A stretch of 64,000 nt of DNA, from the IMG/VR virus record IMGVR_UViG_3300037502_003770, positions 124,001 to 188,000 of that record; one strand, 5' to 3'. The notes beneath the pieces are model-generated. The model was not told the origin of the DNA. It was given only the letters and a program-made list of their open reading frames with translations, and did no database searches. This document shows, one piece after another, positions 21,652 to 55,837 of this stretch. The number at the start of each line of letters is the position of its first letter. Positions within the stretch are counted from its first letter, which is position 1. The translations under genes and the position numbers were made by a program.

Positions 21652-21702
21652 AAAGGATATTCCACTACCAAAATATATTCTTCTCTTAAAATAACCATTT
21701 TT

Positions 21703-23078: not shown

Positions 23079-23083
23079 TAACC

Positions 23084-31938: not shown

Positions 31939-32124
31939 ATGAAAAATTTAATCTATGTAACTAATTTCCTGATAGGTGCTTTAACCTTATTATTACCTAT
32001 TACTTTATATCGTTTTGGTTTAGGAAATAATAATGCAATAATAGTAACTATTTTCTTACTGATTGAATTATTCTTATTAGTAAGATTAAATATTATATTC
32101 AGAAAATTAAATACAACTAAATAA
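31939..32124 (+). CDS. small two-TM membrane protein
   Basis: Hydrophobic 61 aa ORF after a promoter. Confidence 0.7.
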   Translation: MKNLIYVTNFLIGALTLLLPITLYRFGLGNNNAIIVTIFLLIELFLLVRLNIIFRKLNTTK

Positions 32125-32154
32125 ACCTATTCACTTAAAAACAATTTAATCCTT

Positions 32155-32325
32155 ATGGAAAAGACTTTCAGAAAATCAATTGCCTTAATAATTGATTCAT
32201 TATTGTATTTAATACTTTTATTAGTATTGAATTATTCAATTGAAAACATATTTCTTTTAATAGGAAGTGTTTTATTAGGAACATATATATATTTAATTCA
32301 TATAATTAAAAAATATCCTGATTGA
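32155..32325 (+). CDS. small two-TM membrane protein (56 aa, not in track)
   Basis: MEKTFRKSIALIIDSLLYLILLLVLNY...IKKYPD*. Confidence 0.6.
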   Translation: MEKTFRKSIALIIDSLLYLILLLVLNYSIENIFLLIGSVLLGTYIYLIHIIKKYPD

Positions 32326-32357
32326 ACGATGTCGCAAATAGTATTCTCATATATGGG

Positions 32358-32373
32358 AGTTCCACGTGGAACA
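32358..32373. promoter_or_regulatory. parS-like centromere site
   Basis: AGTTCCACGTGGAACA: perfect 14 bp palindrome, 15/16 match to the chromosomal parS form TGTTCCACGTGGAACA. Confidence 0.7.
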
Positions 32374-32376
32374 GTA

Positions 32377-32437
32377 GGGGTGGGGGTGGGTATCCCCTAG
32401 GGGGAGGGGAGGGGAGGTGGGGAGGACAGGGGTGGGG
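32377..32437 (+). other. G-rich tract with G-quadruplex potential
   Basis: Nine runs of 3 or more G in 61 nt, in an otherwise very AT-rich genome. Confidence 0.75.
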
Positions 32438-32483
32438 ACTACATCGAAACATTTTTTCCAAAAAAACAGAATTTTTCTAAGGA

Positions 32484-32624
32484 ACTTTTTTTTAAAGAAA
32501 ATAACCCTTTCTTAAAGGAAGAAATTGATTTACAGATACTTATGTTTTATTTAAAAGACTTTTTTTTAAAGAAAATAAGCTTTCTTTAAGAAAGAAATTG
32601 ATTTAGAGATAGTTATGTTTTATT
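32484..32624 (+). repeat. tandem imperfect repeat, period 74 bp, 2 copies
   Basis: ACTTTTTTTTAAAGAAAATAA...AAGAAATTGATTTA.AGATA.TTATGTTTTATT twice. Confidence 0.8.
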
Positions 32625-32836
32625 CTAAATAAATCTTTTTCAGAAGGTTATAAAATTTTAAGAAAACAGAATTTTTCTAAAGTACTTTTTCTTTACAAGA
32701 ATATTCTTTATGTGTAGATTTTCTAATAGGGGAAGGGGGGGGGTATTTTTATGAGTGGTCAATAAAATTTTTTTGTGGAAAAATTATGATTTTATAAAGA
32801 GAGCTATTTATTTAGAAAGGCGAATAATATTTAAAG

Positions 32837-34345
32837 ATGAGAGATATTAAGAACATTGATAAGCTGAGTGATAATAATCATAAGATAGATATTTTATCTT
32901 TAAATAAATTTTTAATTGAGAGGGGAGATAATTTTTTAGAAACTATTATTACAAACAATTATACCTTTATTAAGAGGGAAGATATTACAAAAGAATTTTT
33001 TCAATTAAATTATAAAAAGATTTTTCATGGTGAAAGTATTGATGATTTGGATTTTCTTGGTAAAGATTTTCCTATTGAGTGGTATAATGTGGATATTTTT
33101 AAATATATTCTTGATACATATTTTATTTTATTTCCAGCTTTTAAAACAATAAAATTATTTCCAAAGGAGATATTCTATATTTATAATTATTGCGAATTAT
33201 TTATTAAATATAATACAGTATTTTTAGAATATATACCAAAAGATATTGAGAATTATTATGAACTTGTTAAACAAGCTTTTATCAAATATGATGAGATAAT
33301 ATGGAAAAATTGGTTTCCAAAGGAATATATTCCTCAATTAAGAAAAGACTTTCCTGATAATTTAACTGTTAAAGCTTATATTCAATTAAAAAATTTATCA
33401 GAAAATAAAAATTCTTTATTAAGGGAAGATTATCGTTATGTATTAACTAATAGTGATGTATATCTTACTAAGAAGATAGAAGCTGTAAGTGATAAAAATA
33501 AGTTTGATGCTATTGCTTTTGATAAGTATTTACTTTCTTTTGGAAATAATGATTTACACAAGATATTATTTAATAAAAGGTATATTATTCCTAGTAAGGA
33601 GAGATTTCAAAAAAATTACATGAATATTTTAAGAAAGAATAATACTGTTAAAAATATTCATGGTTATGATGATGAGAAATATGGTTATTTAAGTTCTTTA
33701 ATACCTAAAGAGTATTATACTAAAGAAATGGTAGATAAGATAGTTGAACATTTTGGTTTATTTACTGTGGTAAAAAAGAGTCTAATAAATCAAAATGTTG
33801 ATGGGTTTGCTAATTTGGTTAAGGAGTATATTACGAATAGGGCTGTTTATTCAATACTTGCCAACATTAATCCTTATATTGAGGGTTATTATGATTTATT
33901 TAAATATGCAATTGAGAAAAATCCTTTTTCGATTAAATATTTAAATACTGAATTTGATAGGTATGAAGAGCTTGCTTTATTTGCTGTTTCTATTAGTGCT
34001 GGTGTCTTATTTTATATACCAGAATATAAAAGAAGTTATTATGTTTGTTTAAAAGCTGTTTCTGAAAATGGTTTTTTAATAAAAAGAGTACCAGAAGATG
34101 TTGAAAACTATTATTCTTTAGTAAAAGTTGCTTATTTACAGAATAAAGATAGTATTAATGAAATTAATTTAAATCCTTATTATATTGATATGTTAAAAAA
34201 GGATTTTCCTGAAGACGAGGAGCTTCAAAAAAAGAAAGGTTTTGATGATGTATTTGATGACCCTTATAATTTTCTTAAAGAACATATTTCAAAACAGGTA
34301 AGAAAGTTATTAAAAGAAGCTATTTATAAGAAAGGAAATTTTTAA
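32837..34345 (+). CDS. two-module DUF4116-like repeat protein with L-x-E linker and C-terminal tag; putative internal head protein
   Basis: KIDILSLNKFLIERGD start, (I/V)PxD(I/V)ENYY repeats, linker LSENKNSLLRE, tail LKEHISKQVRKLLKE. Confidence 0.7.
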   Translation: MRDIKNIDKLSDNNHKIDILSLNKFLIERGDNFLETIITNNYTFIKREDITKEFFQLNYKKIFHGESIDDLDFLGKDFPIEWYNVDIFKYILDTYFILFPAFKTIKLFPKEIFYIYNYCELFIKYNTVFLEYIPKDIENYYELVKQAFIKYDEIIWKNWFPKEYIPQLRKDFPDNLTVKAYIQLKNLSENKNSLLREDYRYVLTNSDVYLTKKIEAVSDKNKFDAIAFDKYLLSFGNNDLHKILFNKRYIIPSKERFQKNYMNILRKNNTVKNIHGYDDEKYGYLSSLIPKEYYTKEMVDKIVEHFGLFTVVKKSLINQNVDGFANLVKEYITNRAVYSILANINPYIEGYYDLFKYAIEKNPFSIKYLNTEFDRYEELALFAVSISAGVLFYIPEYKRSYYVCLKAVSENGFLIKRVPEDVENYYSLVKVAYLQNKDSINEINLNPYYIDMLKKDFPEDEELQKKKGFDDVFDDPYNFLKEHISKQVRKLLKEAIYKKGNF

Positions 34346-34944
34346 TGAAGAATTTTAATAAATTAAATGATACTAAACATGAGATAGATTTAATTTCTTT
34401 AAGTGATTTTTTACTTGAGAAGGATGATGATTATTTAGATAAGTTTATAAAAAAAGAATTTAAAAAACCTGAAGATATAACAGAGACATATCTTAAATTA
34501 TGGTATAAGTATATATTTAATATAGATAGTTATTTTGGTGTATCATACACTGAGTTTGATTTTACTGGTGATGATTTTCCTATTGAGTGGTATATGGATG
34601 CAAAATTTTTAGATACTTTATTTGAAGAATCTGGTATTAAGTTTTTAATGTGTGTACCAAAAGTATTAAGATATGATTATGAAGTTTGTGAACGTTCTAT
34701 TAATAAAAACCCTATTTCTTTAAAGTATGTCCCAAAAGATATTGAGAATTATTATGGTTTAGTAAAGCTTGCTTTTAAGAAAAAACAAAATTTAATTGGA
34801 CAAAAATGGTTTCCAAAGGAATATATTCCTCAATTAAAGAATGATTTGGATGATGAATTATCTCAACATTATTTAAATCTTCAGGAGCATATTTCAAAAG
34901 AAGTGAGGAAACTTTTAAAAGAATACTATTTAAAGAAAATATAG
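34345..34944 (+). CDS. DUF4116-like repeat protein with C-terminal tag
   Basis: EIDLISLSDFLLEKDD ... LQEHISKEVRKLLKE. Confidence 0.7.
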   Translation: MKNFNKLNDTKHEIDLISLSDFLLEKDDDYLDKFIKKEFKKPEDITETYLKLWYKYIFNIDSYFGVSYTEFDFTGDDFPIEWYMDAKFLDTLFEESGIKFLMCVPKVLRYDYEVCERSINKNPISLKYVPKDIENYYGLVKLAFKKKQNLIGQKWFPKEYIPQLKNDLDDELSQHYLNLQEHISKEVRKLLKEYYLKKI

Positions 34945-34948: not shown

Positions 34949-36511
34949 ATGGGATTAGTGTATAATAATAAGAGGATTAAAAAAGATATAAGTGATATTC
35001 ACAATATTGATATTATTTCTTTAAATAAATTTCTTCTTGATAAGGGTGATAAATTTTTTGGAAAGTTATTATATTACAATTGGTGTTTACTTCCTGATAA
35101 GGAGACTTTTCAAAAGAATTGGATGTATTATATTGAAAAGTACGATAAATACAATGAAGATGGTTTTGGTAAAAAATCAAATTTAATACCAAAAGAATAT
35201 TATACAAAAGAGATAATTAATTCTATATTAAAAACTGATTTTGATAGTAATCATAGTTTTACTTTAATTAATCAATATGCTGATGGTTTTGCTGAAAGTG
35301 TTAAGGGTTATTTATTAGATAGAGTTATGTATACAAATTTGTTATATTTTATTAAATCTGATATACCTGGTTATTTTGAGTTATGTAAATCTTTAATAAA
35401 AAAGAACCCATCATATATTGACTATGTACCTAAGACTTATGATAATCAAAAATTAGTTGAGCTTTGTGCGTTAGCTGTTTCTATTGATGGTATGATTTTA
35501 AGATATGTTAGAGATAAAATTGATTTATTTTCAAATCCAAATGTTATATATACGGCAATTAAAAATAATACAATAGCTTTAAGATTTGTACCTACTAGTA
35601 TAGAAAATTATTATTCTTTTCTTAAAACAGCTTATACATTAAATAAAAGAATAATTTCAATAGATAGTGCAAAAGAATATCTTGATGATTTAAAAAGAGA
35701 TTTTCCTGAAGATATAGATTTTATTGAGAAGCGAATTAATCTTCAAGAAAATAAATCTTTATTAAAGGAAGAGAATTTTAATGAGGAGTCTTTTGTTTTT
35801 ACTTCAGATAGACATAAGATAGATATTAAATCTTTAAGCAATTTCTTAATTGAGAAGGGTGACAGGGTTTTAGATACATTATTATATGCTCGTGGTTATA
35901 AGGAAATAGATTATTATTCAGATTTTTTTAGGGAAGAGATTATAAAATATGTTAATTCTGATATTATTAAAAAGATTCCAAAAGAATTGTGGGATGATTA
36001 TTCTTTTTGTTTAACAGTTTCTTCAAGAAATGGTTATTATGCAATTGATTTTATTAATGAAGATTTTTTAAATGATTATAATATTGTAAAAAATCTTTTA
36101 ACTCAACAAGGTGAATTAATAAATAAAGTTAATCCTGATATTTTGGATGAGAAATTAATTAGATTAGCGAATAAAACAAATACTAGTGGAAAAGATTTAA
36201 CTGATACTTGTTATTTTTGGGAACATTATGATGGGAGGTATGAATTATTAAAGAAAATTATTTCTGTATACCCTGATAAAATAAGGTTTATTAGACCTAG
36301 TGATAGTAGATTTGCTGTTGATAAAAAATATTATGAATTATTAAAAATAGCTTACTTAAAGAATAAGAATATTTTAAGATATAAAGATATTAAATACAAG
36401 TATACACCTTATTATGAAAAATTAAAAAATGAGTTTGGTATTAAATTTTATTTAAAAGAGTATATTTCAAAACAGGTAAGAAAGTTATTAAAAGAAAAAA
36501 TCTCCTTATAA
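34949..36511 (+). CDS. two-module DUF4116-like repeat protein
   Basis: Two ID.xSL..FL..KGD starts, linker LQENKSLLKEE, tail LKEYISKQVRKLLKE. Confidence 0.7.
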   Translation: MGLVYNNKRIKKDISDIHNIDIISLNKFLLDKGDKFFGKLLYYNWCLLPDKETFQKNWMYYIEKYDKYNEDGFGKKSNLIPKEYYTKEIINSILKTDFDSNHSFTLINQYADGFAESVKGYLLDRVMYTNLLYFIKSDIPGYFELCKSLIKKNPSYIDYVPKTYDNQKLVELCALAVSIDGMILRYVRDKIDLFSNPNVIYTAIKNNTIALRFVPTSIENYYSFLKTAYTLNKRIISIDSAKEYLDDLKRDFPEDIDFIEKRINLQENKSLLKEENFNEESFVFTSDRHKIDIKSLSNFLIEKGDRVLDTLLYARGYKEIDYYSDFFREEIIKYVNSDIIKKIPKELWDDYSFCLTVSSRNGYYAIDFINEDFLNDYNIVKNLLTQQGELINKVNPDILDEKLIRLANKTNTSGKDLTDTCYFWEHYDGRYELLKKIISVYPDKIRFIRPSDSRFAVDKKYYELLKIAYLKNKNILRYKDIKYKYTPYYEKLKNEFGIKFYLKEYISKQVRKLLKEKISL

Positions 36512-37165
36512 AAGGAGATTAATTTTTATTTGTTTAATTTCTTCTTTAAGAATTTTCTTTACTTGTTTTTGTATATATTCTTCAAGATAATTTCTATCGA
36601 TTTTATTTGGATTAACAATATTTAGTTTAATATTTCTTTGATTACAAAGGTTTTGTAGTTCATCTATAATTTCTTGAGGGTCACGATAATCCACATCCTC
36701 ATAATAATTATCTACTTTTTTTATATCTATTTGAATAATGTATTTTGAAAAATTTTCAATTCTATCTTTATTTGATAAAATCCTATCTTCATACTCAAAA
36801 TTCCTATCATCTTTATTAGCAAATTTAAAATGGTTAAATGGTTGACCTTTATAAGTTTGTGAAAGTTTTCTACCATCTAATTTTAATCTAACAATAAAAT
36901 CTAAATCATATAATTCTTTTTCATTCCAATCATTATTTAATTTATAAAAACCAGTTTTTGATGATTTAGTTCTACTTAGTGATAAATAATTATATCCATT
37001 TATATAATCATCATCTTCACCATATTTTAAATAAAAAATATCATCTTTTAAAATACTTATAATACTACTTAACGTTGTAAAATGATATACTTCATCAGTT
37101 ACAGATTCTTTTAATAAACTCTTTACTTGTTTTTGTATATATTCTTTTAATAATTGATTTTCCAT
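36506..37165 (-). CDS. ADP-ribosyltransferase-like domain flanked by two tags
   Basis: VYHFT...LSLSR...LDGRKL...FEYEDRILS; LKEYIQKQVKSLLKE at the N-end and LEEYIQKQVKKILKE at the C-end. Confidence 0.6.
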   Translation of the reverse strand: MENQLLKEYIQKQVKSLLKESVTDEVYHFTTLSSIISILKDDIFYLKYGEDDDYINGYNYLSLSRTKSSKTGFYKLNNDWNEKELYDLDFIVRLKLDGRKLSQTYKGQPFNHFKFANKDDRNFEYEDRILSNKDRIENFSKYIIQIDIKKVDNYYEDVDYRDPQEIIDELQNLCNQRNIKLNIVNPNKIDRNYLEEYIQKQVKKILKEEIKQIKINLLL

Positions 37166-37236: not shown

Positions 37237-40200
37237 ATGAAAGATATTAATGTAATAAATGATAATAATAAGATAGATTTAAGTTCTTTGAATAAATTTC
37301 TTATTAGTAAAGGTGATGAGTATTTAGAATATTTATTAATTAGTAATGTTTATAATAAAAATATTACAGAAGACAAAATTAGAGAATATGTTTTAAAAGG
37401 TTATAATATTAAAGAAGAATTATTAAAGTTTGTTACAAAAGATAAAGAATTATATTCATATATTAGTTTAATGAATAAAGTACTTGAAGAAATATATAAA
37501 GAAAATTCAAGCGAAGAAGATACTGAGTTTTATATATTACCTTTAGATTTTATTAAAAGTAATAAATATTTTTCAATAGATAAATTTTTTAGTGTATATG
37601 GTGGGTATGCTATTAGATTTATACCATATGAATTACAAACAAAAGAATTATGGGAATTTTCAGCTTTAAAATCACCTTATTTTATAAGTGATGATAGTTT
37701 TCCTCAAGAGTATAAAAGTTATAATTTATTTTTAAAATTAATTGAGATTGAATCATCTCTTATTTATGATGCAGCTGATAGTAATATTTTTAATAAAGAT
37801 GAGATTTATAATTTATTCGAGTTTACATACAAAAAATATATTAAAGAAAATAATGTATCTGAATTTTGGAAAACACATAGATATAACCCATTAGATTTTA
37901 AAGATATATATCTTAAATTAGCAAGTAATTTTAAACATGAATCATATTTAAAAAAATATGGGATTCCTGATATTCATGATGTACCTAGATTTGCATTTAA
38001 TGAAAGTAAGTCTTTATTAAAAGAAGAAACTTTATTGGATAAATTTAAATTAATGGATGAAAATAAGATTGATTTATTTTCTTTAAATAAATTTCTTCTT
38101 TCAAAAGAAGATAATTTATTAGAATATTTATTATTAGAGAATAATTTAATTTTTGGTTTAGATGAAAATAAAATTAGAAACTTTATATTAAAAGGTTATA
38201 AACCGTTAGAAACATTTCCTAATAATATAAAAATTGATATGGATTTAAAGGAGTATGTTAATGTATTATTAACTTTTGAATCTATTAAATATATTCCTAA
38301 TGAGAAATATACTGTTTCGTATGCTAAATTAAAAGATAATAAATATATTTCAATAGAAGGTCTTTTAAAATATAATTCTTTATTTATTAGGTATATCCCT
38401 GAAAATTTATTAACACAAGAAATATGTAATAATGTATATAATAAAAATTACAGAATTTTTAGAGAAATTCCAAATAGGTTTAAAACATATGAAATGTGTG
38501 AAAATGTTATAGGTAAAAACGCATATTTTTTTGTTTATTTACCTGACCCTTTGGATAATGGTACTTTAATTACGGTTCAGGAATGTTATAAATTATTAAA
38601 ACTTGCTCATACTTATTATATTGATAAAGATAAATTTTCAAATGGTGTTGAACAATTTTGGAGTGATGCTATTGTTTCAAAATTAGATAGAGATTATTTT
38701 GTTAGATTAATGTATGAAGTAAATGCACAAGAATATGTAGGAAAATACGGTCAGGGTGGTATTAAGAAAAATAATAATCTTCAAGAAAGTAACTCTTTAT
38801 TAAAGGAAGAAGAATTCTTTAATGTAGAACAACTAGAATATGATTCAGATAAAAATAAAATAGATTTACAAGAATTAAGTGAATTTTTATATAATAACGG
38901 AGATGATTATTTAGAATATTTATTAGCCAATAAAGAATATATTAAAGTTGATAGTAAAAATGTTTTTAGATTATATAAAAATAAAAATTTTAAAGATGTA
39001 ACTGAATTTTTAAATATTGGTTATGATTTTTTAAATGTAATATTAACTGACCCTATTGAAAAAAACAAAATAGAACAATTTTATTTAAAAAACCGATACC
39101 CTCATGATTATCCAGATATTTTATGGGAAAGTCGTGCATTTTGTGAGGCTGCTTTAATTAAACAAAAGAGTTGTTTATATAAAGTACCACTTAAATTTAG
39201 AGATTATAAAATGTGTAAGCTTGCTGTTAGTTTTGATGGTGATAATATAAAAAGTGTACCTGAAAATATTGAGAATTATTATTCTCTTTGTGAAATGGCT
39301 GTTTCTCAAAGGGCTTGGTCTTTGATGTTAATTGATAAGAATAAATGGGATTATAATTTATATGAAAAAGCTGTTTCTCAGAATGGTGGTGTTTTATTTT
39401 ATATACCTGAAAAATATAGAGACTATAATTTATGTGAAAAAGCTGTATCTAGTGAACCTAGTTCAATATATGATGTACCTAAAAATATTGAGAATTACTA
39501 TTCTTTAATAAAACTTGCTTACTCAAAGGATAAAACAGTTATATTAGATATGAATTTACCAAAAGAGTATTTTGATAAATTAAAAAATGATTTTCCTAAA
39601 GACTTTAATCTTCAAGAAAGTAAGTCTTTGTTAAAGGAAGGAATTACTGATGAGGTATATCATTTTACAACATATCAATCAGCTGCTGAAATATTACAAT
39701 ATAATAGATTTAAATTTTCTATTGAGACTGAAGGTGATTCTTTATCAAGGATGAATAATTACAAAAATTATATGTCTGTAAGTAGGACTAAGTCTTTAAA
39801 TAAAGGTTTTTTTAATACAATAAAGAATGGTGTTAATTTAGTTATTAGATTTAAACTTGATGGTAGAAAATTAGCTCAAAAATATAAAGGTATTCCATTT
39901 AATTATTTCCCTGCTTGGGGTAAAGAAAATTATGCTTTTGAATATGAGGATAGATTGCTTTCAAATGATGAATATATTGAAAATTTTTCAAAATATCTTT
40001 TATCTGTAGATATTATTGATTTAACTATTGGAAATAATATAAATAAAACAAAAATCCATACAATAAAAGAATTATCTCAAAAATTAAATCTTGTTTGCAA
40101 TGTTTATAAACATGATGATAATAATATTGTAAGAAAACAATTTCAATCCGACCCGATTAATTTTATTAAAAATAAAGGAACTTTTGTTTTAAATGATTCT

Positions 40201-42216
40201 TTTTTTACAAAAGAAATTGTTGATGAAATATATAATCATTTTAAAGAAAATATTTATACATATATTCGTTTATCTCAAATACCAGCTGAATTTAGAAATT
40301 ATGAGCTTTGTGAATTATATATAAAAAAGAACCCTATTAATATTATAGGAGTACCTTCACCAAATAATACTTTAATAAAAAACAATTTAATATCAAGAGA
40401 AGAATATATGTCTTTGGTAAGGATAGCTTTTTCTTTAGATAAAAATATAATAGATTATATCCCAGATGAATTTGAGAAAATATTAAGAGATGAAATTAAT
40501 AAAGCAAGTAATAATAATCTTCAAGAAAGTAAATCTTTATTAAAGGAAGGTATTACTGATGAGGTGTATCATTTTACAAGTTTAGAAAATTTTATTAAAA
40601 TAATGAATACAAATACATTTAGATTTTCAGATTTATTATATGATTTAAGTGATGTTATTCATAATACACCTTTAAAAAAATATAAATATTATATGTCTTT
40701 AAGTAGGACTGGTTCAATAAAAACAGGTTATGGTAACTATCAAAGTGATAATAGTAATTTTATTGTTAGATTAAAAATAGATGGTAGAAAACTTTCGCAA
40801 AGTTATAAAGGTCAACCAATAAATTATCATAATTATGGTAGAAAACAAAAATCTAGTAAAAAAACTAGTTTTAGATTTGAATATGAGGATAGAATATTAT
40901 CCAATAAACCAACTATTGAGAATTTTTCAAATTATGTTTTAAGTGTTGATATTATTAAAATTACTAATTCATCTAATAATTTTTTATTAGATGATGATAT
41001 GAAATCATTAGAATATATATTAAAAAATAAAGAAAATTATAACGCACCAATAAATTTCACAAATGAAAAAAATTCACCTCTTAATGAAAATAAATCTTTA
41101 TTAAAGGAAGGTATTACTGATGAGGTGTATCATTTTACAAGTTTAGAGAATTTAATTAGAATATTAAAAAGTAATTCTTTAAATTTAAGTTTTATGGATA
41201 ATGATATTAATCAGACTTGGAATAGGAAAGATAGCAATATACATAAAACTTTAAATAAATATATGTATTTTTTATCATTAAGTAGAACAAAGAGTATTGA
41301 TAAAGGTTATGCTCAAGTATTAAAATCACAAAATATACCTGTCATTACCAGAATTAAACTTGATGGTAGAAAACTTTCTTTTAATAATAAAATTATACCT
41401 TTTGATTATAATCAAACTATTAGCCGAAATGTTAATAAAAATGATAAATATTTTGAATACGAAGATAGATTAGTTAGTGATAAATCTTCAATTAAAAATA
41501 TAAATAATTATATTTTAGAGATTGATATTTTTATGTATTATAATTATGATTTTCAAAAAGATAGTTTTTTATTCTTAAAAGAATATCAAAATACCACAAA
41601 TATACCGATAAAAGTTTTTAATAAAGTAAAAAATAATTCTTTAAATGAAAGTAAATTATTATTAAAGGAAGATTATACAGAGGAAGAAGTTTTAGAAGAA
41701 ATAAGTGATAAAAATAAAATAGATTTAATTTCTTTAAATAAATTTCTAAAAGAAAATAATGATGATTATTTAGAATATTTATTATTTTATAATGATTTTT
41801 TAAATATAGAAAGAAATATTATAAAAATAGTAAAAAATAAATACATTACAGGTTTTGGTAGTTTCCCAATAAAATATTTATATCAACCAAAAGTAATAAG
41901 AGAAATAGTATTAAGAAATCCTGAATTATTAGAAAGATTGAATTTATATTACTTAGAAAGAATGGAAGATAGTAAACAGGAAATGAAAGATATTTACAAA
42001 TACGCTGTAATAAATAAACCAAATATGTTATCACGTATACCAACTAATCTACCTTATTATGATGAACTGCTTGAGGTGATGTTTCAAAAAGATAGAGGTA
42101 ACTTATTTGATTTATTAATTATTCAACCAAAATCTATTCAACAAAGTAATATGTTAAATAAAGTAATATCTTTTTTACAAAATAAAGGTTATACTTTAGG
42201 AAAAAATCCTTCTTAA
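37237..42216 (+). CDS. 1659 aa seven-module polyprotein (4 DUF4116-family-type modules and 3 ART-like modules)
   Basis: Six (L/F)(Q/N)E(S/N)(K/N)(S/L)LLKE linkers at 37996, 38779, 39610, 40519, 41080, 41641. Confidence 0.75.
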   Translation: MKDINVINDNNKIDLSSLNKFLISKGDEYLEYLLISNVYNKNITEDKIREYVLKGYNIKEELLKFVTKDKELYSYISLMNKVLEEIYKENSSEEDTEFYILPLDFIKSNKYFSIDKFFSVYGGYAIRFIPYELQTKELWEFSALKSPYFISDDSFPQEYKSYNLFLKLIEIESSLIYDAADSNIFNKDEIYNLFEFTYKKYIKENNVSEFWKTHRYNPLDFKDIYLKLASNFKHESYLKKYGIPDIHDVPRFAFNESKSLLKEETLLDKFKLMDENKIDLFSLNKFLLSKEDNLLEYLLLENNLIFGLDENKIRNFILKGYKPLETFPNNIKIDMDLKEYVNVLLTFESIKYIPNEKYTVSYAKLKDNKYISIEGLLKYNSLFIRYIPENLLTQEICNNVYNKNYRIFREIPNRFKTYEMCENVIGKNAYFFVYLPDPLDNGTLITVQECYKLLKLAHTYYIDKDKFSNGVEQFWSDAIVSKLDRDYFVRLMYEVNAQEYVGKYGQGGIKKNNNLQESNSLLKEEEFFNVEQLEYDSDKNKIDLQELSEFLYNNGDDYLEYLLANKEYIKVDSKNVFRLYKNKNFKDVTEFLNIGYDFLNVILTDPIEKNKIEQFYLKNRYPHDYPDILWESRAFCEAALIKQKSCLYKVPLKFRDYKMCKLAVSFDGDNIKSVPENIENYYSLCEMAVSQRAWSLMLIDKNKWDYNLYEKAVSQNGGVLFYIPEKYRDYNLCEKAVSSEPSSIYDVPKNIENYYSLIKLAYSKDKTVILDMNLPKEYFDKLKNDFPKDFNLQESKSLLKEGITDEVYHFTTYQSAAEILQYNRFKFSIETEGDSLSRMNNYKNYMSVSRTKSLNKGFFNTIKNGVNLVIRFKLDGRKLAQKYKGIPFNYFPAWGKENYAFEYEDRLLSNDEYIENFSKYLLSVDIIDLTIGNNINKTKIHTIKELSQKLNLVCNVYKHDDNNIVRKQFQSDPINFIKNKGTFVLNDSFFTKEIVDEIYNHFKENIYTYIRLSQIPAEFRNYELCELYIKKNPINIIGVPSPNNTLIKNNLISREEYMSLVRIAFSLDKNIIDYIPDEFEKILRDEINKASNNNLQESKSLLKEGITDEVYHFTSLENFIKIMNTNTFRFSDLLYDLSDVIHNTPLKKYKYYMSLSRTGSIKTGYGNYQSDNSNFIVRLKIDGRKLSQSYKGQPINYHNYGRKQKSSKKTSFRFEYEDRILSNKPTIENFSNYVLSVDIIKITNSSNNFLLDDDMKSLEYILKNKENYNAPINFTNEKNSPLNENKSLLKEGITDEVYHFTSLENLIRILKSNSLNLSFMDNDINQTWNRKDSNIHKTLNKYMYFLSLSRTKSIDKGYAQVLKSQNIPVITRIKLDGRKLSFNNKIIPFDYNQTISRNVNKNDKYFEYEDRLVSDKSSIKNINNYILEIDIFMYYNYDFQKDSFLFLKEYQNTTNIPIKVFNKVKNNSLNESKLLLKEDYTEEEVLEEISDKNKIDLISLNKFLKENNDDYLEYLLFYNDFLNIERNIIKIVKNKYITGFGSFPIKYLYQPKVIREIVLRNPELLERLNLYYLERMEDSKQEMKDIYKYAVINKPNMLSRIPTNLPYYDELLEVMFQKDRGNLFDLLIIQPKSIQQSNMLNKVISFLQNKGYTLGKNPS

Positions 42217-45411: not shown

Positions 45412-46211
45412 TATTCAGGTTTATTAATATTATTTTTGATACTAAATAATTCTTGGTTATTAACACTATATTTATTAATAATTGAAGTTGGTGCTTTCAC
45501 TATTTGGAAATCTGATTTCTTAATAAGATAACCTCTTAAAACAACTTTAAATACTTTTACATAATATCTTTTTCCTTCAAGGTCATTTAATGTTCCATCG
45601 GAACTAACATCTTCAAGATTTAAAGGCATGTAATGACCGTTTACATTAATATATAATTGTCTTTCATTAAACTTATTTAAATAAAGTTCAACCATTTCAT
45701 TTACATCGGTTATAAAAGCTGATATTAATCTTATTTCATATTCAATATCTATTGGAGTTGGTTGAGTTATTTTATAATGAATATATGTTAACATATCATT
45801 TTCAATAACAGGCATTTTATAATAACTAAAAGCTTTTTTATTAGGAATATTAAATTTCTCTCCGTAGATAGTTCCTTTAAGAATATTGGTTCTTTCCATT
45901 GTTATAAATGGAGGAACAAGGTTTTTATTATCATCTTGCAAGTGCCAAGTTTTTTGAAATTCACCCCATCTTTCATTATTCATAAAAATTGTATCAACTT
46001 TAACTCTTTCATCATTTTCACTAAGAATTGATAATGATAAATCACCTTCATTTGTACAATTAAATACAGCAATATCCAAATCGGCAATATCAATACTTTG
46101 AGGTAAAAAAGTAGAGTTTTCATCTGTTTGATTTAACAGTTCTTCAACACGAACAATTCCAACATTTGTAGGGTATGTATTTCTTAAAGAAGTTTTTTTA
46201 GGTAGAGCCAT
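45411..46211 (-). CDS. tail completion / sheath terminator (T4 gp15-like)
   Basis: VPPFITMER and QPTPIDIEYEIRLISAFITDVNEMVE resemble gp15-family motifs; structural gene context. Confidence 0.55.
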   Translation of the reverse strand: MALPKKTSLRNTYPTNVGIVRVEELLNQTDENSTFLPQSIDIADLDIAVFNCTNEGDLSLSILSENDERVKVDTIFMNNERWGEFQKTWHLQDDNKNLVPPFITMERTNILKGTIYGEKFNIPNKKAFSYYKMPVIENDMLTYIHYKITQPTPIDIEYEIRLISAFITDVNEMVELYLNKFNERQLYINVNGHYMPLNLEDVSSDGTLNDLEGKRYYVKVFKVVLRGYLIKKSDFQIVKAPTSIINKYSVNNQELFSIKNNINKPE

Positions 46212-46965
46212 TTACTTTTCTTTTAAATAGTAATTCTTTTAAAAGTTTTTTTACCTCTCTTGAAATATATTCTCTTAAATTAAACTTCTCTTTTATTTGT
46301 TTTAATATCAAAGGGTCTTCTATATAGTAAATAAGGGTTTTATCATTAGAAACAACTATTTCCCAAAGGTGAAAATCTTGTAAATGTTTAGGTACATGAA
46401 ATATTGAATCAGAAAAACTTAAAACAGCTTTTTCACAAAGAGAGTAATCTATAATTTTTTTAGATACATATGGTAAACAACCATATTGAGACGTAACAGC
46501 TTTTTCACAAAGAGAGTAATAATTTTCAATATTATCAGGTACAAATTGTAAAGCTGTGCCATCTTGAGAAATAGCTTTCTCGCAAAGAGAATAATCTCTT
46601 AATTCTTCTGGCACAAATTCTAAAGCTGTTCCATTTGTAAAAACAGCTTTCTCACAAATAGAATAATCTCTTAAATGTTTAGATACAAATTCTAAAATCC
46701 AACCATTTTTAGAAACAGCTTTTTCACGAAAAGAATATATATTCCATAATTCTTTTGGTATACGTTTAATATCATCTTCTTCATTGCTGTATATTATACT
46801 TATATAATAATTTAGTAATCTTTTATTAGAAAGGTTTTTTTCTTTAAAACCATTTACTTGCAATAATATATCTATTAAATCATCTCCTTTCTCAAGTAAA
46901 AAATTATTTAAAGAAAGTAAATCTATTTTATGTTTATCACTTATATTTTCTAACTTATTATTCAT
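46198..46965 (-). CDS. DUF4116-like repeat protein with C-terminal tag
   Basis: 25 aa repeats VPEELRDYSLCEKAxxxGxALxF; tail LREYISREVKKLLKE. Confidence 0.8.
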   Translation of the reverse strand: MNNKLENISDKHKIDLLSLNNFLLEKGDDLIDILLQVNGFKEKNLSNKRLLNYYISIIYSNEEDDIKRIPKELWNIYSFREKAVSKNGWILEFVSKHLRDYSICEKAVFTNGTALEFVPEELRDYSLCEKAISQDGTALQFVPDNIENYYSLCEKAVTSQYGCLPYVSKKIIDYSLCEKAVLSFSDSIFHVPKHLQDFHLWEIVVSNDKTLIYYIEDPLILKQIKEKFNLREYISREVKKLLKELLFKRKVNGST

Positions 46966-47506: not shown

Positions 47507-48991
47507 ATGAAAATTAAAAATATAAAAAGAATTTTAAAGGAAGAAACCAAAGGTGAAAGATATTTGAATAGTAAACTATCTAATATGGGTCCTATGGGTA
47601 TATCAAGACAGATTAGTAATCTTGGTGGTTACGGTCAAATAGATACTTTAAAGAAAGCTGAAGAAGAATTTTATAAATTACATAGAGTAGAATTTAAATT
47701 AAATAATCAAAAATATGAGGGTTATTTTATTGTATATCCTCAAAGTGATAATACTCTTATTTTTTATGATGGTTTACCCTTTGCAAAAAAGAGAGATACG
47801 ATGTATACAGGCGGTGAATTAAATAAAGATAAATCTGTAATATTTACAGGTTCAAGAGTAGATTTACAACTTTTAAAAACATATCAAAACTTTCTAAAAA
47901 GATTTAATTTAAAAAGTATAGTGTTAAAAGGATTTCCTGATATTACTGAACAAATTAAAAAAAATATAATTGTTGATGTAAAATTATTTTTTGAACAATT
48001 ATATAATCTTTTTATTATAAAAAATGAATTTTATAAAGAAATAGATGATTTTATAAATATATTTACTCAATTAAAAAAATACCCAAAAAATAGTAGATTG
48101 AATCGTAATGTAATTGATAAATATACTAATTTTAGAAATAATTTTGTTAATAGTAATGTATTGGAAAATAATATATTTAATGTCTTTAATAGTTATAATG
48201 TTGATGAAGCTTTTAATACTAGTGATATATCTGGTTTGTATATATATTTTAATTTTATAAAAAATAATATCGAAGAAATAAGAAATTCATCATCACAAAT
48301 AATTAAATTTTTAGAAAATTTATCTAATAAAAATAGTACCAGAATTAGTCAACCGTTTATCAGTAGTGATAAATATGATGTTAGTTATATTGTTAACGTA
48401 AAAAATAATTTATTACCAGGTGTTAAATCAGAATTAAAAAATCAAATACTTGAATTTACCTATATTAGTGAAAACTTAATAGATAAATCTAACTATAAAA
48501 TGGGTAAATCTTTGGGTGTTATGAAAATTAATGGTATATCTTTGAATATGAGGGATAAAAATGATAAATATGAAATAATATTTGATGCTGAAAAAAGTAT
48601 TATTTCATTAACTATTAACGGTAATAAACAATCTGGTAGTGATAGGGATAATAGTCTTAAAAAAATATTAGATAATATTTTTATTCAAAAATTTAATGGT
48701 GAATTTAATTATATAAATACTAAATTAATAAATGATGCTATAAATAATAAAATGTATAATTTTAATTATATTGAAAATAATAATAGACATTATCGTTTAG
48801 GTAGGTCAGGCGCACCTTTTAAATTTGATATTCTTTTCTATAATGACTTAGATGGTACAATGTTTAAAGGTAAATTACCTAACATTAATATTATATCCTT
48901 ACAAATAAATGATTTTAAAATATTAAAAGAACAGACAACATATATAGATGAAATAAAAATAAATATTGAATTTATATCAACAAATAATTAA
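47507..48991 (+). CDS. hypothetical protein with N-terminal ILKEE tag
   Basis: MKIKNIKRILKEE. Confidence 0.7.
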   Translation: MKIKNIKRILKEETKGERYLNSKLSNMGPMGISRQISNLGGYGQIDTLKKAEEEFYKLHRVEFKLNNQKYEGYFIVYPQSDNTLIFYDGLPFAKKRDTMYTGGELNKDKSVIFTGSRVDLQLLKTYQNFLKRFNLKSIVLKGFPDITEQIKKNIIVDVKLFFEQLYNLFIIKNEFYKEIDDFINIFTQLKKYPKNSRLNRNVIDKYTNFRNNFVNSNVLENNIFNVFNSYNVDEAFNTSDISGLYIYFNFIKNNIEEIRNSSSQIIKFLENLSNKNSTRISQPFISSDKYDVSYIVNVKNNLLPGVKSELKNQILEFTYISENLIDKSNYKMGKSLGVMKINGISLNMRDKNDKYEIIFDAEKSIISLTINGNKQSGSDRDNSLKKILDNIFIQKFNGEFNYINTKLINDAINNKMYNFNYIENNNRHYRLGRSGAPFKFDILFYNDLDGTMFKGKLPNINIISLQINDFKILKEQTTYIDEIKINIEFISTNN

Positions 48992-52455: not shown

Positions 52456-53211
52456 ATGATTAATTTAGGTATTATAAAAACAAATCTGAGTAGAGTTGTA
52501 GCTGAGAATCTATTATCTGAAAATAAAGATATTAATAAAGTTGATTTATATAAAAATTTTTTAAATATTCTTAAAACATCAGATATTCTTATGTTGGAAT
52601 ATAATATATTTAAAAATTTTGAACAAAAGAATCATTCTATTGAATCAGCTTATAATTTAATATCTGAAAATTTAAGACCGATAAAGTCTTTTACAAAGAA
52701 AGAAATTATTAATGAGAATAAAAAAATAAAAGATTTTAATTTAAAAAATAATCTTTCTCAAAAAGAAAACACTTTTTATAATGCTATTCATAATTTAATT
52801 ATGGAATCAACAGCTAAATATCCTGATATTAATCTTTTACATGAATCACATGAAATTATATTAAATTCTTTACTTGAAAAAAAATCTCTTATTAAAGAAG
52901 AAAGACAAATTAATAAAGTAAATAATGCTGTTATAAATTTGGCTACTAAAAAAATTAATGAAGAGATAGGTAAATTCTCTTCTAAAGAAAAAGATATATT
53001 GCAAACTTTATCTAAAGGAACTTTTAATGATAAAGTAATGTTGCTTGAAAATATTAAAGGTGAGTGTAAGATATTAATAGAAGATTCTAAATCTTTAATA
53101 GAAGATTATGTTTATGAAAATACTATTAATAAAATAAATAATATTGATGCAACGCCTGAAACTATAAATGAATCAATACTTGATTTATATTCTTTGTTAA
53201 GTGATGAATAA
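52456..53211 (+). CDS. hypothetical late protein
   Basis: 251 aa with many L/I-x-E sites; CTATTTA at 52428. Confidence 0.75.
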   Translation: MINLGIIKTNLSRVVAENLLSENKDINKVDLYKNFLNILKTSDILMLEYNIFKNFEQKNHSIESAYNLISENLRPIKSFTKKEIINENKKIKDFNLKNNLSQKENTFYNAIHNLIMESTAKYPDINLLHESHEIILNSLLEKKSLIKEERQINKVNNAVINLATKKINEEIGKFSSKEKDILQTLSKGTFNDKVMLLENIKGECKILIEDSKSLIEDYVYENTINKINNIDATPETINESILDLYSLLSDE

Positions 53212-54007
53212 ATTAAAAGTAATTAATGATAATAATCAAATAGATTTACTTTCTTTAAGTAATTTTTTATTAAGAAAAAAAGATGATTATCTTGAAGCTT
53301 TATTAAAAATAAATGGTTATAAAAAATTAATTATTGATTATAATAGTGATTTCTTTTTTGATAGAATTTTACCATACGGAGAATCAAAATATTTTAATGT
53401 AAATATAATACCAGACCAATATTGGTATAATTATGATTTTTGTATGAGAGCCATTTCGTCTAATGGCTGTGGTTATTTATTATCTTATGTACCGAAAGAA
53501 TTAAGAGATTATAAACTTTGTAAGAAAGCTGTATCTGATAAAAATAGTGCTGGTATTATTTTAGGTTTTGTTCCAAAAAAATTAAGAGATTATTCTCTTT
53601 GTGAAATAGCTGTTTATAGTGATTGGATGAATTTAGAATATGTACCAGAAAATTTAATAGATTCTTCTTTATGTGAAATAGCTATCACTCAAAATGGTTA
53701 TTCTTTAAAATTTGTACCGAAAGAATTAAGAGATTATTCTCTTTGTGAGAAAGCTGTTAATAATAATGCTTTCGCTTTACAGTTTGTTCCTAAAAATATT
53801 GAAAATTATTATTCTTTACTAAAAATAGGTTTTAAACAATACGATTCAGCTTTAGTTAGTAATGAATGGTTTCCAATAAACTATATTCCTCAATTAATCA
53901 AAGATTTTCCACAATATAAAGAATCACTTGAATCGTATCTTCTTCAAGAATATATTAAAAAAGAAGTAAAGAAATTATTAAGGGAGTACTATTTAAAAGA
54001 AAAATAG
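53201..54007 (+). CDS. DUF4116-like repeat protein with C-terminal tag
   Basis: VPKELRDYSLCEKAV repeats; LQEYIKKEVKKLLRE. Confidence 0.8.
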   Translation: MMNKLKVINDNNQIDLLSLSNFLLRKKDDYLEALLKINGYKKLIIDYNSDFFFDRILPYGESKYFNVNIIPDQYWYNYDFCMRAISSNGCGYLLSYVPKELRDYKLCKKAVSDKNSAGIILGFVPKKLRDYSLCEIAVYSDWMNLEYVPENLIDSSLCEIAITQNGYSLKFVPKELRDYSLCEKAVNNNAFALQFVPKNIENYYSLLKIGFKQYDSALVSNEWFPINYIPQLIKDFPQYKESLESYLLQEYIKKEVKKLLREYYLKEK

Positions 54008-54008
54008 T

Positions 54009-55250
54009 ATGTCGTTTTTCAATTGTAACCTTGATGAAATCAATAAATATAAGATAGTAGATATTGATATATCAGATAATAAATCATGGAATTTAAATAC
54101 TGGTTTAACTATTAATTCATTAAAAAAATATAATGATGCAATAACATCTACTTTTGAATTACCTACTTATGGATTAACAGCGTTTGATTATGGTTTAGTT
54201 AATTCATTAACAGCAACAACTACCATCAATTATACAGATAATAAATTAAAATTACAAAGAGTAGGAGAAAATGATTTTACTGGTAATACAAGTTATACTG
54301 GGTATAGTATTACACCTGTAACAACAGCTACTACTGTAGGGAATTATTTTCTTTTAGAAGGAGGATATTTTACAGGGTTTTATAAACTTCATGATTATGA
54401 ATATGAAATATTACCTTATAGATATAACGAAGGTTTAACTATTTCAACATGGATTAATGTACAATCAGGTATTACTTTTGAAAATATTTTATCTGAAAAA
54501 GATGGTTTCTTTTTTTATATGGGTGCTTTAGCTGAGAATAAATATTCATTAGCTTATTCAGGTGATACAATATATTCTTCTTTTACTGGAACAAATATCA
54601 CAAAAAATGTAGATTTATCAGGAAATACAACAGGTTTAACAAATATTTTTTTAAATGACCATACTGATTTAGAATCAGGTATTACTAAAAATATAATAGC
54701 TTTTAGAATAAATCAAAATAAACAGATAGGTTATAGATTTTTAGATTATACTGGAAATACAATAGAAAATTATTCTGATAAAGAAATTTCTTATGGATGG
54801 AATAATATTACAATAACATTTAAACCAAAAGAATTAATTAAAGATAAAGATTTATTAAATTGTTATAAAGATAGGGATATGGTATTGACAATTTATTTAA
54901 ATGGGATTATTATTTATGAAGAAATAGATTTTAAAGAAATATGGTTTAAAGAAATGTTTACTGAAAGAGAAAAACAATTACATATACCATATGTTATTAA
55001 TTGGGGTGGAGGTAGTTTTGGTTTAAAACATTCTTGGCATTTCAATAATTCATTAAATGAGTTTATTCAAGATGAAAGAAAAAAAGATTTATTAATTGAG
55101 AAAAATTTTGATGGTTCTTTTTATGGTGGTATTCAAAAATTGGAATTATATAATAAAGCGTTAAATTTTATTGAGGTAAGAAAAATTATTGAATATTATT
55201 CAAAATATAATATAAATAATTTTAAAGGCGGAAGATTGATTAATATATAA
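54009..55250 (+). CDS. LamG/concanavalin-A-like virion protein
   Basis: LTISTWIN, GWNNITITF, TIYLNG, FYGGIQKLELYNKALNFIEV. Confidence 0.65.
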   Translation: MSFFNCNLDEINKYKIVDIDISDNKSWNLNTGLTINSLKKYNDAITSTFELPTYGLTAFDYGLVNSLTATTTINYTDNKLKLQRVGENDFTGNTSYTGYSITPVTTATTVGNYFLLEGGYFTGFYKLHDYEYEILPYRYNEGLTISTWINVQSGITFENILSEKDGFFFYMGALAENKYSLAYSGDTIYSSFTGTNITKNVDLSGNTTGLTNIFLNDHTDLESGITKNIIAFRINQNKQIGYRFLDYTGNTIENYSDKEISYGWNNITITFKPKELIKDKDLLNCYKDRDMVLTIYLNGIIIYEEIDFKEIWFKEMFTEREKQLHIPYVINWGGGSFGLKHSWHFNNSLNEFIQDERKKDLLIEKNFDGSFYGGIQKLELYNKALNFIEVRKIIEYYSKYNINNFKGGRLINI

Positions 55251-55837
55251 TGAAGAATATTGATAAGGTTAGTGATAGAAATCAAATAGATTTACTTTCT
55301 TTAAATAAATTCTTTATTGAGAAAGGGGATGATGAATTAGAATATTTATTATGGAATAATCAACTTATAGATACTAATTATTCAAATGAACGTATACAAA
55401 ATTATATTATAAAAAGATTTCAACCTAATGAAATAAAGAATGAGTTTTATTTATCATATAAATTTTGTGAAAAAATAGTTACTAAAGATGGTATGGCTTT
55501 AATGTATGTACCCGAACATTTAAAAGATTATAATCTTTGTGAGAAAGCTGTTAATAATGAACCATATGCTATACATTTTATACCAAAAACAATAGAAAAT
55601 TACTATGAATTAGTAAAAATTGTTTTTAAATTAGCAGTTAAATGGAAATTAAAAGAGTCTGAAATTTTTAAATATATATCAAGAGATGATTTAATACAAT
55701 TAAAAAAAGATTTTCCAGAACATATAGATTTTTTTGATGAGCTTAACTTAAAAGAATATATTTCCAAAGAAGTAAGAAAATTATTAAAAGAACAAATTTT
55801 TAAAAATAAAAACTATTTAATTAAAAATATAAAATAA
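55250..55837 (+). CDS. DUF4116-like repeat protein with C-terminal tag
   Basis: QIDLLSLNKFFIEKGD ... LKEYISKEVRKLLKE. Confidence 0.75.
   Translation: MKNIDKVSDRNQIDLLSLNKFFIEKGDDELEYLLWNNQLIDTNYSNERIQNYIIKRFQPNEIKNEFYLSYKFCEKIVTKDGMALMYVPEHLKDYNLCEKAVNNEPYAIHFIPKTIENYYELVKIVFKLAVKWKLKESEIFKYISRDDLIQLKKDFPEHIDFFDELNLKEYISKEVRKLLKEQIFKNKNYLIKNIK

Follow-up and report, generated by a model that had tools for sequence, protein, structure and literature searches.

The locus lies on a 312-kb metagenomic contig of an uncultured phage that is known here from its sequence alone; 88 kb of the contig were examined, and the stretch of 64,000 nt that was analysed as a whole is referred to below as the window. 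The genome has a GC content of 22%, and leucine, lysine and glutamate are abundant in its proteins. The dominant gene of the locus (Table 1) had been described as a phage polyprotein cut into units by six linkers, and all six were located in an intact reading frame, ending at residues 263, 524, 801, 1104, 1291 and 1478. The predicted order of the units, A-A-A-B-B-B-A, is revised to A-A-A-(B+a)-B-B-A, as unit 4 possesses an extra DUF4116-like tail at its C-terminus; four A units and three B units comprise eight domains in seven units. The two consecutive units of 561 bp were recovered as units 5 and 6, each of exactly 561 nt, and both module types are also present as stand-alone genes in the neighbourhood, type B in one ORF on the minus strand and type A in six.

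Table 1. Features of the polyprotein locus and related genes (positions in the window)
Feature	Position	Strand	Remarks
LLKE-leader non-family proteins	20450-20752, 21307-21651, 58257-58862		N-terminal leader
Two-unit A paralog	32837..34345	+	internal linker LSENKNSLLRE (about 33395-33427); C-terminal long motif 34280-34318
One-unit A paralog	34345..34944	+	ends in long motif and tail YYLKKI
Two-unit A paralog	34949..36511	+	short linker 35741-35770; C-terminal long motif 36458-36496
Stand-alone B gene	36506..37165	-	219 aa; long motif at both ends
Polyprotein ORF	37237..42216	+	open, 1659 aa, seven units; five-unit orthologue P0002 in related genome
Unit 1, type A	37237..38025	+	N-terminal motif NKIDL..SLNKFL..GD.YLEYLL, helical body; linker FNESKSLLKE 37996-38025
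Unit 2, type A	38026..38808	+	linker LQESNSLLKE 38779-38808; 74% identity to P0002 unit 1
Unit 3, type A with DUF4116 repeats	38809..39639	+	linker LQESKSLLKE 39610-39639
Unit 4, B (ART-fold) and DUF4116-like tail	39640..40548	+	303 aa; linker LQESKSLLKE 40519-40548; 89% identity to P0002 unit 3
57-nt tract, linker end and B start	40530..40586	+	identical copy at 41091-41147
Unit 5, B domain	40549..41109	+	187 aa / 561 nt; linker LNENKSLLKE 41080-41109
Unit 6, B domain	41110..41670	+	187 aa / 561 nt; linker LNESKLLLKE 41641-41670
Unit 7, type A, short	41671..42216	+	without terminal motif
One-unit A paralog	46198..46965	-	DUF4116 E 3.8e-23; C-terminal long motif
Non-A/non-B protein	47507..48991	+	N-terminal LLKE-type leader MKIKNIKRILKE
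One-unit A paralog	53201..54007	+	C-terminal long motif
One-unit A paralog	55250..55837	+	C-terminal long motif

Each linker consists of 10 residues, is nearly identical to the others and carries two hydrophobic-x-E sites, [LF]-[NQ]-E and L-K-E. A further repeat had been expected near position 35738, and a seventh copy (LQENKSLLKE) was indeed found at nt 35741 within one of the two-unit A paralogs. The linker is a shortened form of a 15-aa motif, L-x-E-Y-I-S-K-x-V-K-K-L-L-K-E, which closes every stand-alone A paralog and borders the stand-alone B gene on both sides; the linker can be aligned with the motif at the C-terminus of at least 12 stand-alone paralogs, as well as with both leader and trailer of the B gene. 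The leader of the latter (M-E-N-Q-LLKEYIQKQVKSLLKE) is 20 aa long and brings LLKE directly ahead of the B domain, and its trailer (LEEYIQKQVKKILKE) lies 11 aa ahead of the stop. In the stand-alone genes the motif is kept and followed by a short conserved tail; motif and tail together (LLKEYISKEVKKLLKEYYLKEK) display a regular amphipathic, basic, helix-like repeat, conserved past the putative cut. The short linkers have lost the helix middle and kept both x-x-E sites. The two glutamates are invariant in 13 of 13 short linkers from three polyproteins with varying flanking positions. The linkers form low-confidence ends in the AF2 models of both an A and a B unit, and are therefore probably exposed.

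Similar peptides were also encountered in other phages. An LRR protein of another phage contig has the linker-type motif as its leader, nine adjacent genes of Alishewanella phage Slickus01 with different domains have one common leader ending in L-x-E, and in a Vibrio phage of the Straboviridae the B protein begins with MKKFNEF..., comparable to the T4 IPII/IPIII leader MKTYQEFIAE. Among 166 B domains, hydrophobic-x-E almost always precedes the domain; this family-wide feature may serve to cap the fold structurally instead of marking a cut. L-x-E is, moreover, a weak motif in an L/K/E-rich genome of such low GC content, which counts against the cleavage reading.

The B module, described earlier as ART-like, matches no Pfam family (the DarT model included) and no PHROGs family in any of its units, and a profile search of PDB sequences returned nothing meaningful; Tox-ART-HYD1 gave a faint signal (E 0.012) in only 3 of 46 B members. 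The assignment is sustained at the level of the fold. When the AF2 model of unit 5 (pLDDT 84, pTM 0.83) was compared with the PDB by Foldseek, DarT was the best match (E 3e-4, probability 1.00, TM 0.46-0.49), followed by Tpt1, TreTu and cholera toxin A1; the DarT/Tpt1 structural matches (7yk3_C, E 3e-4; 8baq, E 3.2e-4; 7omw; 8tg3) have TM-scores of only 0.40-0.49. The modelled structure thus supports an ADP-ribosyltransferase fold. Across 46 B sequences, H8, S50, E113 and R115 never vary and R53, E111 and D114 are almost fully conserved, and all are retained in units 4-6; the conserved pattern, H ... [YF]xSx[ST]R ... ExEDR, would fit a putative ART site of the H-Y-E type. A role of B as a Ser-His-Asp protease cutting its own linker was rejected, the fold search having given ART folds only. 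The B family comprises more than 900 clusters at 50% identity.

Assignment of the A module to the DUF4116 family (PF13475) holds for unit 3, which scores 41 bits (E 1.4e-10) against a Pfam cutoff of 24.9 bits, but not for the remaining A units by this threshold, unit 2 reaching 16.4 bits and units 1 and 7 giving no Pfam match to DUF4116. Units 1 and 7 were placed in family A by BLASTP paralogy and the common N-terminal motif. The AF2 model of unit 3 is an all-alpha solenoid (pLDDT 84), for which Foldseek retrieved only generic helical repeats from the PDB, all with E above 0.4. Paralogs of A are interspersed with portal, protease and baseplate-like genes, and family genes are also scattered among replication genes.

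Pfam and PHROGs detected no peptidase family in any unit of the polyprotein. Its N-terminus (MKDINVINDNNKIDL) is devoid of a T4-style cleavable leader and of any L-x-E-terminated or LLKE leader. Internal translation starts at the unit boundaries were rejected, since in-frame start codons are not consistent. A T4 late-promoter-like sequence (TATAAATA) lies 54 nt 5' of the ORF; such sequences are only mildly enriched 5' of genes (10/95) and constitute weak evidence. When 24 kb were compared with cultured phages by megablast, no match was obtained; the window yielded nothing in Rfam and tRNA scans, and a protein search of the ORF-free interval 31461-32837 revealed no decayed family gene. Most of the large neighbouring ORFs received no function from PHROGs or Pfam.

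Head-assembly genes are located on the same contig, about 12-17 kb to the right of the window, and the polyprotein gene is not adjacent to them. They include a T4 gp21-type Peptidase_S77 gene (L018 9329-9997; Pfam E 1.2e-27), whose product is 36% identical to T4 gp21 with aligned catalytic His and Ser blocks, and the genes of a T4-type portal (PF07230) and a gp23-type capsid protein (PF07068). A terminase is found on the same contig, and an acidic 482-aa scaffold-like protein is encoded between the protease and capsid genes. T4 gp21 cleaves after L/I-X-E (PMC9026906), and the linker sites fit this published specificity. In T4, an Asp in place of the Glu prevents processing. The capsid protein, when aligned with T4 gp23, shows no L-x-E where the T4 protein is cut, so that the specificity is assumed for the protease of the contig, a point against the cleavage reading; candidate sites in this capsid protein are LNE (residues 59-61) and SFE (about residues 68-70).

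The leader-type peptide is not confined to families A and B. Six of 81 non-family proteins, the S77 protease itself and its neighbour gene among them, contain [LI]L[KR]E within their first 30 residues, where shuffling expects 0.5-0.84; this is an enrichment of about 7- to 12-fold at the N-termini of unrelated proteins, reached by 0-1 of 5000 shuffles. The protease gene on the contig, the fit of the linker sites to gp21 and the LLKE leaders on unrelated proteins argue circumstantially for maturation by the prohead protease, as the original prediction had it.

With 6-8 copies, the linker-coding DNA makes up a repeat family, in agreement with the repeat reported earlier. The identity of about 55 bp noted at 40530 and 41091 is exact over 57 nt, and outside this tract units 5 and 6 have about 42% protein identity. 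Together with the rare codons common to the linkers (AAG, CTT), the 57-nt identity indicates concerted evolution at the DNA level. The same codon is used at identical residues in 85% of cases in linkers versus 66-81% in B bodies, a difference too small, given the strong codon bias, and DNA-level selection on the linkers was not accepted on this ground. In a syntenic relative, the polyprotein has five modules against seven here, with mosaic module identities ranging from 95% to none. Neighbouring genes are fused or split in the relative exactly at copies of the motif, and one deletion lies there too; at the position of the end motif of 34345..34944, the relative instead reads through a short linker in frame into the next unit. 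The comparison of module number and order that had been proposed as a check places breakpoints at the motif: whether a module has been added, removed, exchanged, fused or split off between the genomes, the change falls exactly at a linker or terminal motif. An expandable, modular cassette reshuffled at its linkers is well supported by these comparisons.

The ORF is best read, in our judgement with somewhat better than even confidence for the explanation as a whole, as a precursor in which a T4-related jumbo phage concatenates seven cargo modules. Each junction is an abbreviated version of one lineage-specific peptide (L-x-E ... L-L-K-E), which also serves as leader or C-terminal extension of single-module paralogs. 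The chain would be made late and join the prohead core; the gp21-type S77 serine protease would then cut after Glu at one or both L-x-E sites of each linker, releasing free modules that would remain inside the capsid until they pass along with the DNA into the host, where the B units may ADP-ribosylate a nucleic acid or protein target of the host. Linker-coding DNA would be the recombination site for duplication, deletion, swap, fusion and split of modules. The unit anatomy, the modelled folds, the protease gene, the distribution of the motif and the reshuffling of modules between genomes are observed; packaging and cleavage of the chain are strongly suggested and, like injection and enzymatic activity, inferred. 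The N-terminus of the polyprotein has no LLKE leader that would explain its route into the prohead, which counts against the packaging reading, as do the location of the gene away from the head genes and the weak late-promoter evidence.

It is also possible, although we consider it doubtful, that the A modules serve as bulk material inside the head (scaffold- or inner-body-like, comparable to the phiKZ/SPN3US paralogs) and are protease-cleaved, the polyprotein loading structural filler stoichiometrically with the ART units as passengers. About one fifth of the coding capacity in the examined 88 kb belongs to the A family, its module is a non-enzymatic alpha-solenoid without a PDB match, its paralogs lie among the portal, protease and baseplate-like genes, and processed inner-body paralog families are known in giant phages (PMC9026906, PMC5694885). 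However, the acidic 482-aa protein is already available as a separate scaffold-like candidate, and the fast turnover and mosaicism of the A modules resemble conflict-driven more than structural evolution.

An uncleaved multidomain 'polyvalent' protein is an unlikely explanation of the ORF. The linkers would then be no more than what is left of the terminal helices of paralogs that used to be separate, with tandem duplication and gene conversion maintaining their similarity, and the protein would act as one 195-kDa chain, packaged or not. The concerted evolution of linker DNA agrees with this, as do the tandem B proteins of other lineages (P0012, P0038), which have no separate linker beyond the conserved start of the domain; many polyvalent proteins, such as the N4 virion RNAP, are delivered unprocessed (PMC5512222). 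Such a chain nevertheless leaves unexplained the occurrence of the peptide as a leader at the N-termini of non-homologous proteins, the protease among them, the motif and short conserved tail of the stand-alone genes, and the invariant Glu pair in 13 linkers with varying flanks. That the motif is cut or bound by another agent (a host protease, or as an amphipathic docking or oligomerisation helix in the cytoplasm), the proteins not being virion cargo, is improbable: the amphipathic, basic character of motif and tail, conserved past the putative cut, and the family genes among replication genes fit it, but the short linkers dispense with the helix middle and keep both x-x-E sites. The head protease is the better candidate, given that the linkers match the gp21 specificity, that the protease itself carries the motif at its N-terminus and that T4 IP and Alt offer precedents.

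The proposed cleaved precursor is a variant that extends two known systems, the T4 internal proteins and the polyvalent proteins. T4 IPI, IPII, IPIII and Alt carry capsid targeting sequences cut by gp21 (PMC3012670, PMC9026906). As in T4, diverse cargo including an ART (Alt in T4) bears a short common peptide ending in L/I-x-E, this conserved peptide is the sole part common to otherwise unrelated cargo (PMC3012670, PMC9026906), and a gp21-type protease is encoded in the same genome; gp21 trims Alt at both ends, and the same is predicted for the stand-alone B gene product. Unlike in T4, the peptide has 15 aa or is shortened to 10 aa, is mostly C-terminal and intermodular rather than N-terminal only, and joins up to seven cargo units per chain, the cargo families being the DUF4116 solenoid and the DarT-like ART.

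Polyvalent proteins are large multidomain proteins of phages and conjugative elements that are predicted to be packaged and injected, with ART as the commonest modifying enzyme; their domains turn over in a mosaic fashion, and a release of the domains by proteolysis has been proposed (Iyer et al. 2017, PMC5512222). The ORF resembles them in that one chain holds a number of conflict-related domains within their range of 2-15, and in that the phage encodes a portal and a terminase for packaging. Those proteins, however, as a rule bring together a wide range of enzymatic domains, and about one in three (frequently, not universally) carry an MPTase or other embedded peptidase, whereas the ORF repeats two module types only, has no detectable peptidase and possesses explicit repeated linkers matching the specificity of a trans-acting head protease. 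In the giant phages phiKZ, 201phi2-1 and SPN3US, a diverged gp21-type protease likewise cuts after the Glu of a three-residue motif, and head-internal paralogs have identical N-terminal propeptides, some with several cleavage sites (PMC5694885). Their motifs, (S/A/G)-x-E or A-x-E, differ and their proteins are encoded by separate genes; a concatenated seven-unit precursor with repeated linkers is not described in the literature cited here. In structure, the B module is matched best by DarT/DarTG and Tpt1/KptA, but B differs from DarTG in having no DarG-like antitoxin partner and in its context of phage cargo rather than a toxin-antitoxin pair, and from DarT in having no sequence-level match to the PDB or the Pfam DarT model.

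If the linkers are cut, the ORF would represent a clear tailed-phage polyprotein strategy for injected cargo, with one gene, one targeting event and a fixed stoichiometry of several effectors, which the head protease would set free. The sequence rule of a leader or linker ending in L-L-K-E could be used to predict which proteins of an uncultured jumbo phage are located inside the head, and is directly testable. The breakpoints at peptide-coding DNA extend the idea that T-even phages swap internal-protein genes via a conserved targeting sequence. The B family points to a large, uncharacterised DarT/Tpt1-like ART family in big myoviruses, almost always with a short leader ending in hydrophobic-x-Glu. 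Quite tentatively, a short amphipathic peptide of this ending, flanking any domain, may constitute a portable 'packaging grammar' of T4-superfamily phages for prohead loading and gp21-type release, the units being concatenated in some jumbo phages and recombining in the peptide DNA, and the B family may then comprise a widespread and previously undescribed class of head-packaged and injected DarT-like ARTs that act on nucleic acids.

Translation of the ORF and a pattern search confirm the original description of a 1659-aa chain with six linkers, a linker-DNA repeat and two 561-nt units. The open ORF 37237..42216 (+) carries six copies of [LF][NQ]E[SN][KN][SL]LLKE, ending at residues 263, 524, 801, 1104, 1291 and 1478, and one further copy lies at nt 35741 within the neighbouring ORF 34949..36511; at the DNA level the linkers constitute a family of direct repeats. 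Units 5 and 6 measure exactly 561 nt each and display only ~42% protein identity, despite an identical tract of 57 nt (40530-40586 and 41091-41147). The described unit order A-A-A-B-B-B-A, with A a DUF4116-family module and B an ART-like module, holds in outline, except that in unit 4 (303 aa) the B domain continues into a DUF4116-like tail. The placement of A in the DUF4116 family is upheld by Pfam for unit 3 only; unit 2 falls below the threshold, and units 1 and 7 count as A members on the grounds of BLASTP and the common N-terminal motif ..IDL.SLN.FL..KGD..LE.LL. The polyprotein lacks an N-terminal leader of its own.

All stand-alone A paralogs end in a long motif, L-x-E-[YH]-I-S-K-x-V-[KR]-K-L-L-[KR]-E, with a short tail behind it that is conserved in part; the window holds six such genes, two-unit genes included, and other parts of the contig another five. 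In the stand-alone B gene, the first copy of the motif is a 20-residue N-terminal leader abutting the B domain, and the second lies 11 residues ahead of the stop codon. The 10-residue linkers align with the terminal long motif in the family alignment, by which the linker is a shortened long motif retaining both x-x-Glu sites. When a degenerate DNA pattern of the long motif was scanned over the viral contig collection, matches were obtained in two contigs only, 13 of them in this contig; the second contig is a phage, in which a leucine-rich-repeat protein has the motif as its N-terminal leader.

Coordinates of features in the window, elsewhere on its contig (L016) and in other contigs
Feature	Location	Strand	Remark
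Stand-alone B gene	36506..37165	-	Long motif twice
T4-type portal, intein-interrupted	L016 14549-16954, about 13 kb right of window	-	Intein_splicing E 2.9e-9
PARP-like third cargo module	L003 6975-9332 (syntenic relative), residues ~21-260; also P0162	-	Behind same leader
Nine-gene 'hypothetical' tandem array adjoining terminase	L013 8028-14630, OQ508957		Alishewanella phage vB_AspM_Slickus01
Tandem-B proteins	L021 10001-13783 (P0012); L020 1992-5594 (P0038)		Unrelated metagenomic phage-like contigs

The window belongs to IMG/VR contig 3300037502_003770 (312,694 bp), which encodes, to the right of the window, a large terminase and a portal, both T4-type and the latter intein-bearing, a prohead protease matching Peptidase_S77 (E 1.2e-27), an acidic scaffold-like protein and a gp23-type capsid protein. 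The protease shares 36% identity with T4 gp21, and the His and Ser blocks align. In T4, gp21 cleaves C-terminal to the Glu of L/I-X-E, internal proteins bear capsid targeting sequences of 10-20 residues, the ADP-ribosyltransferase Alt is trimmed N- and C-terminally, and diverse internal proteins conserve the targeting sequence alone (PMC9026906, PMC3012670, PMC5694885). Two TnpB / IS605 OrfB-type genes occur on the contig, one at 18228-19403 of the window and one at 5370-6572 (-) of L018, a stretch right of the window, the latter amid A paralogs between portal and prohead protease. Between a UvrD-like helicase and the first A paralog, 1.4 kb (31461-32837) is devoid of ORFs of at least 80 aa and shows no similarity to Rfam, tRNA or proteins; it contains a G-rich island at about 32330-32440 in a genome of 22% GC, and a 73-nt tandem repeat holding linker-like DNA (32484-32629, with part of a third copy near 32660). 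A 799-aa protein (55837-58236) combines a PHROG 7595 N-terminal domain (E 2.6e-13), DUF4116 repeats and, towards the C-terminus, a long region without assigned function.

Of 81 proteins that belong to neither the A nor the B family, encoded in 88 kb of the contig, six carry [LI]L[KR]E in the first 30 residues, as compared to an expectation of 0.5 by whole-protein shuffles and 0.76-0.84 by shuffles keeping the N-terminal composition; 0-1 of 5000 shuffles reach six. Two of the six are the prohead protease, with ..GLLKE at residues 16-20, and the product of the next gene downstream, with ..FLLKE at residues 20-24. This downstream gene (L018 10001-11185; 394 aa, with a 24-residue LLKE-terminated leader) occupies the position of the T4 scaffold gene, and one segment appears GNAT acetyltransferase-like by eye, with no Pfam match. 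Two small proteins among the six, at 20450-20752 and 21307-21651, have LLKE-type N-terminal leaders; across 20000-24000, where they lie, the GC skew falls sharply to about -0.35, yet the ORFs are still oriented along the plus strand.

A short leader ending in hydrophobic-x-Glu almost always precedes the domain in 166 library B domains. Nine adjacent genes of Slickus01 share a ~13-residue leader, MKID.LYESLLEE, five encoding B and four other domains, and the array, in a cultured phage, resembles a locus for internal proteins. The B protein of a Straboviridae Vibrio phage starts MKKFNEFAKELEE, and the leader of T4 IPII/IPIII is MKTYQEFIAE according to the T4 record. In P0012 and P0038, tandem-B proteins of other lineages, [FILM]-x-E stands ahead of every copy. 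These observations speak for the peptide as a portable signal, part of which may cap the fold. P0012 and P0038 have B domains in tandem, five or six per protein, each after [FILM]-x-E-[GA]-K-Q, and P0012 additionally has a NUDIX domain.

No match of B was found in Pfam, PHROGs or PDB sequences, and its sole recurring Pfam hint is Tox-ART-HYD1 (E 0.012, in 3 of 46 members); an exhaustive profile-free search returned 928 cluster representatives at E <= 1e-3. Across 46 aligned members, H8, S50, E113 and R115 are invariant and R53, E111 and D114 nearly so, and the conserved residues are kept in all three polyprotein copies. The AlphaFold model is confident (pLDDT 84, pTM 0.83), and the ART-like nature predicted for B is backed by its fold matches in the PDB, led by DarT (E 3e-4) and including DarT1, Thermus DarT, Tpt1, the Rhs ART TreTu and cholera toxin A1, with moderate TM-scores of 0.40-0.49. 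Among predicted viral structures, B matches uncharacterised large-myovirus proteins (Dickeya JA11, Bacillus SP-15 and G, Agrobacterium Atu_ph07). B is concluded to adopt an ART fold, probably in its H-Y-E form, with a putative ADP-ribosyltransferase activity and target.

The A unit was modelled as an all-alpha solenoid (pLDDT 84), and a PDB search with the model gave no significant match. Close relatives of A are confined to a narrow group of metagenomic phages, and the family accounts for about a fifth of the coding capacity of the 88 kb; this abundance favours the solenoids being bulk inner-body-like material rather than effectors.

The predicted reshuffling of modules is evident in a syntenic relative (L003/L004), whose 1198-aa orthologue has five units, A-A-(B with DUF4116-like tail)-B-A, and four linkers, as compared to seven units in the window. 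These units are 74, 42, 89, 95 and 43% identical to window units, the order of the first two is swapped, and window units 3 and 6 have no counterpart. Differences in the neighbouring genes fall exactly at the motif. In the relative, the window's ORF 34345 is fused via a short linker to the second unit of ORF 34949, whereas the window's reading frame closes there with the long terminal motif and a stop codon. A 785-aa minus-strand gene of the relative comprises a leader, a PARP-like-looking module, a DUF4116 array, motif, B and motif; the window's 219-aa B gene equals this gene minus all between two motif copies. The PARP-like module, absent from the window, shows VYHRT and GAGLYTT motifs, resembles a PARP-type (H-Y-E) ART and has no Pfam match on record. 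P0003, a third polyprotein, has yet another unit arrangement.

The main rival explanation is an uncleaved polyvalent protein, the linkers of which are inherited domain termini; weak points of the packaging and cleavage reading are the missing N-terminal leader of the polyprotein, the protease specificity taken over from T4, and the simplicity of the motif in a proteome rich in Lys, Leu and Glu. Model confidence is low at both modelled unit ends, which fits exposed linkers. CTS-type leaders, gp21-type cleavage, packaged ARTs and polyvalent proteins are already known (PMC5512222, PMC9503650), as are processed paralog families in giant phages. Their union in one chain of several units, with explicit repeated linkers of protease type and no embedded peptidase, is not described in the literature cited here (PMC5512222 and PMC9503650 among it). 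The best-supported interpretation is that the polyprotein is a concatenated precursor of head-internal cargo, which the S77 protease, with a specificity assumed from T4, would process at the linkers, and the evolution of which would proceed by recombination within the linker-coding DNA.
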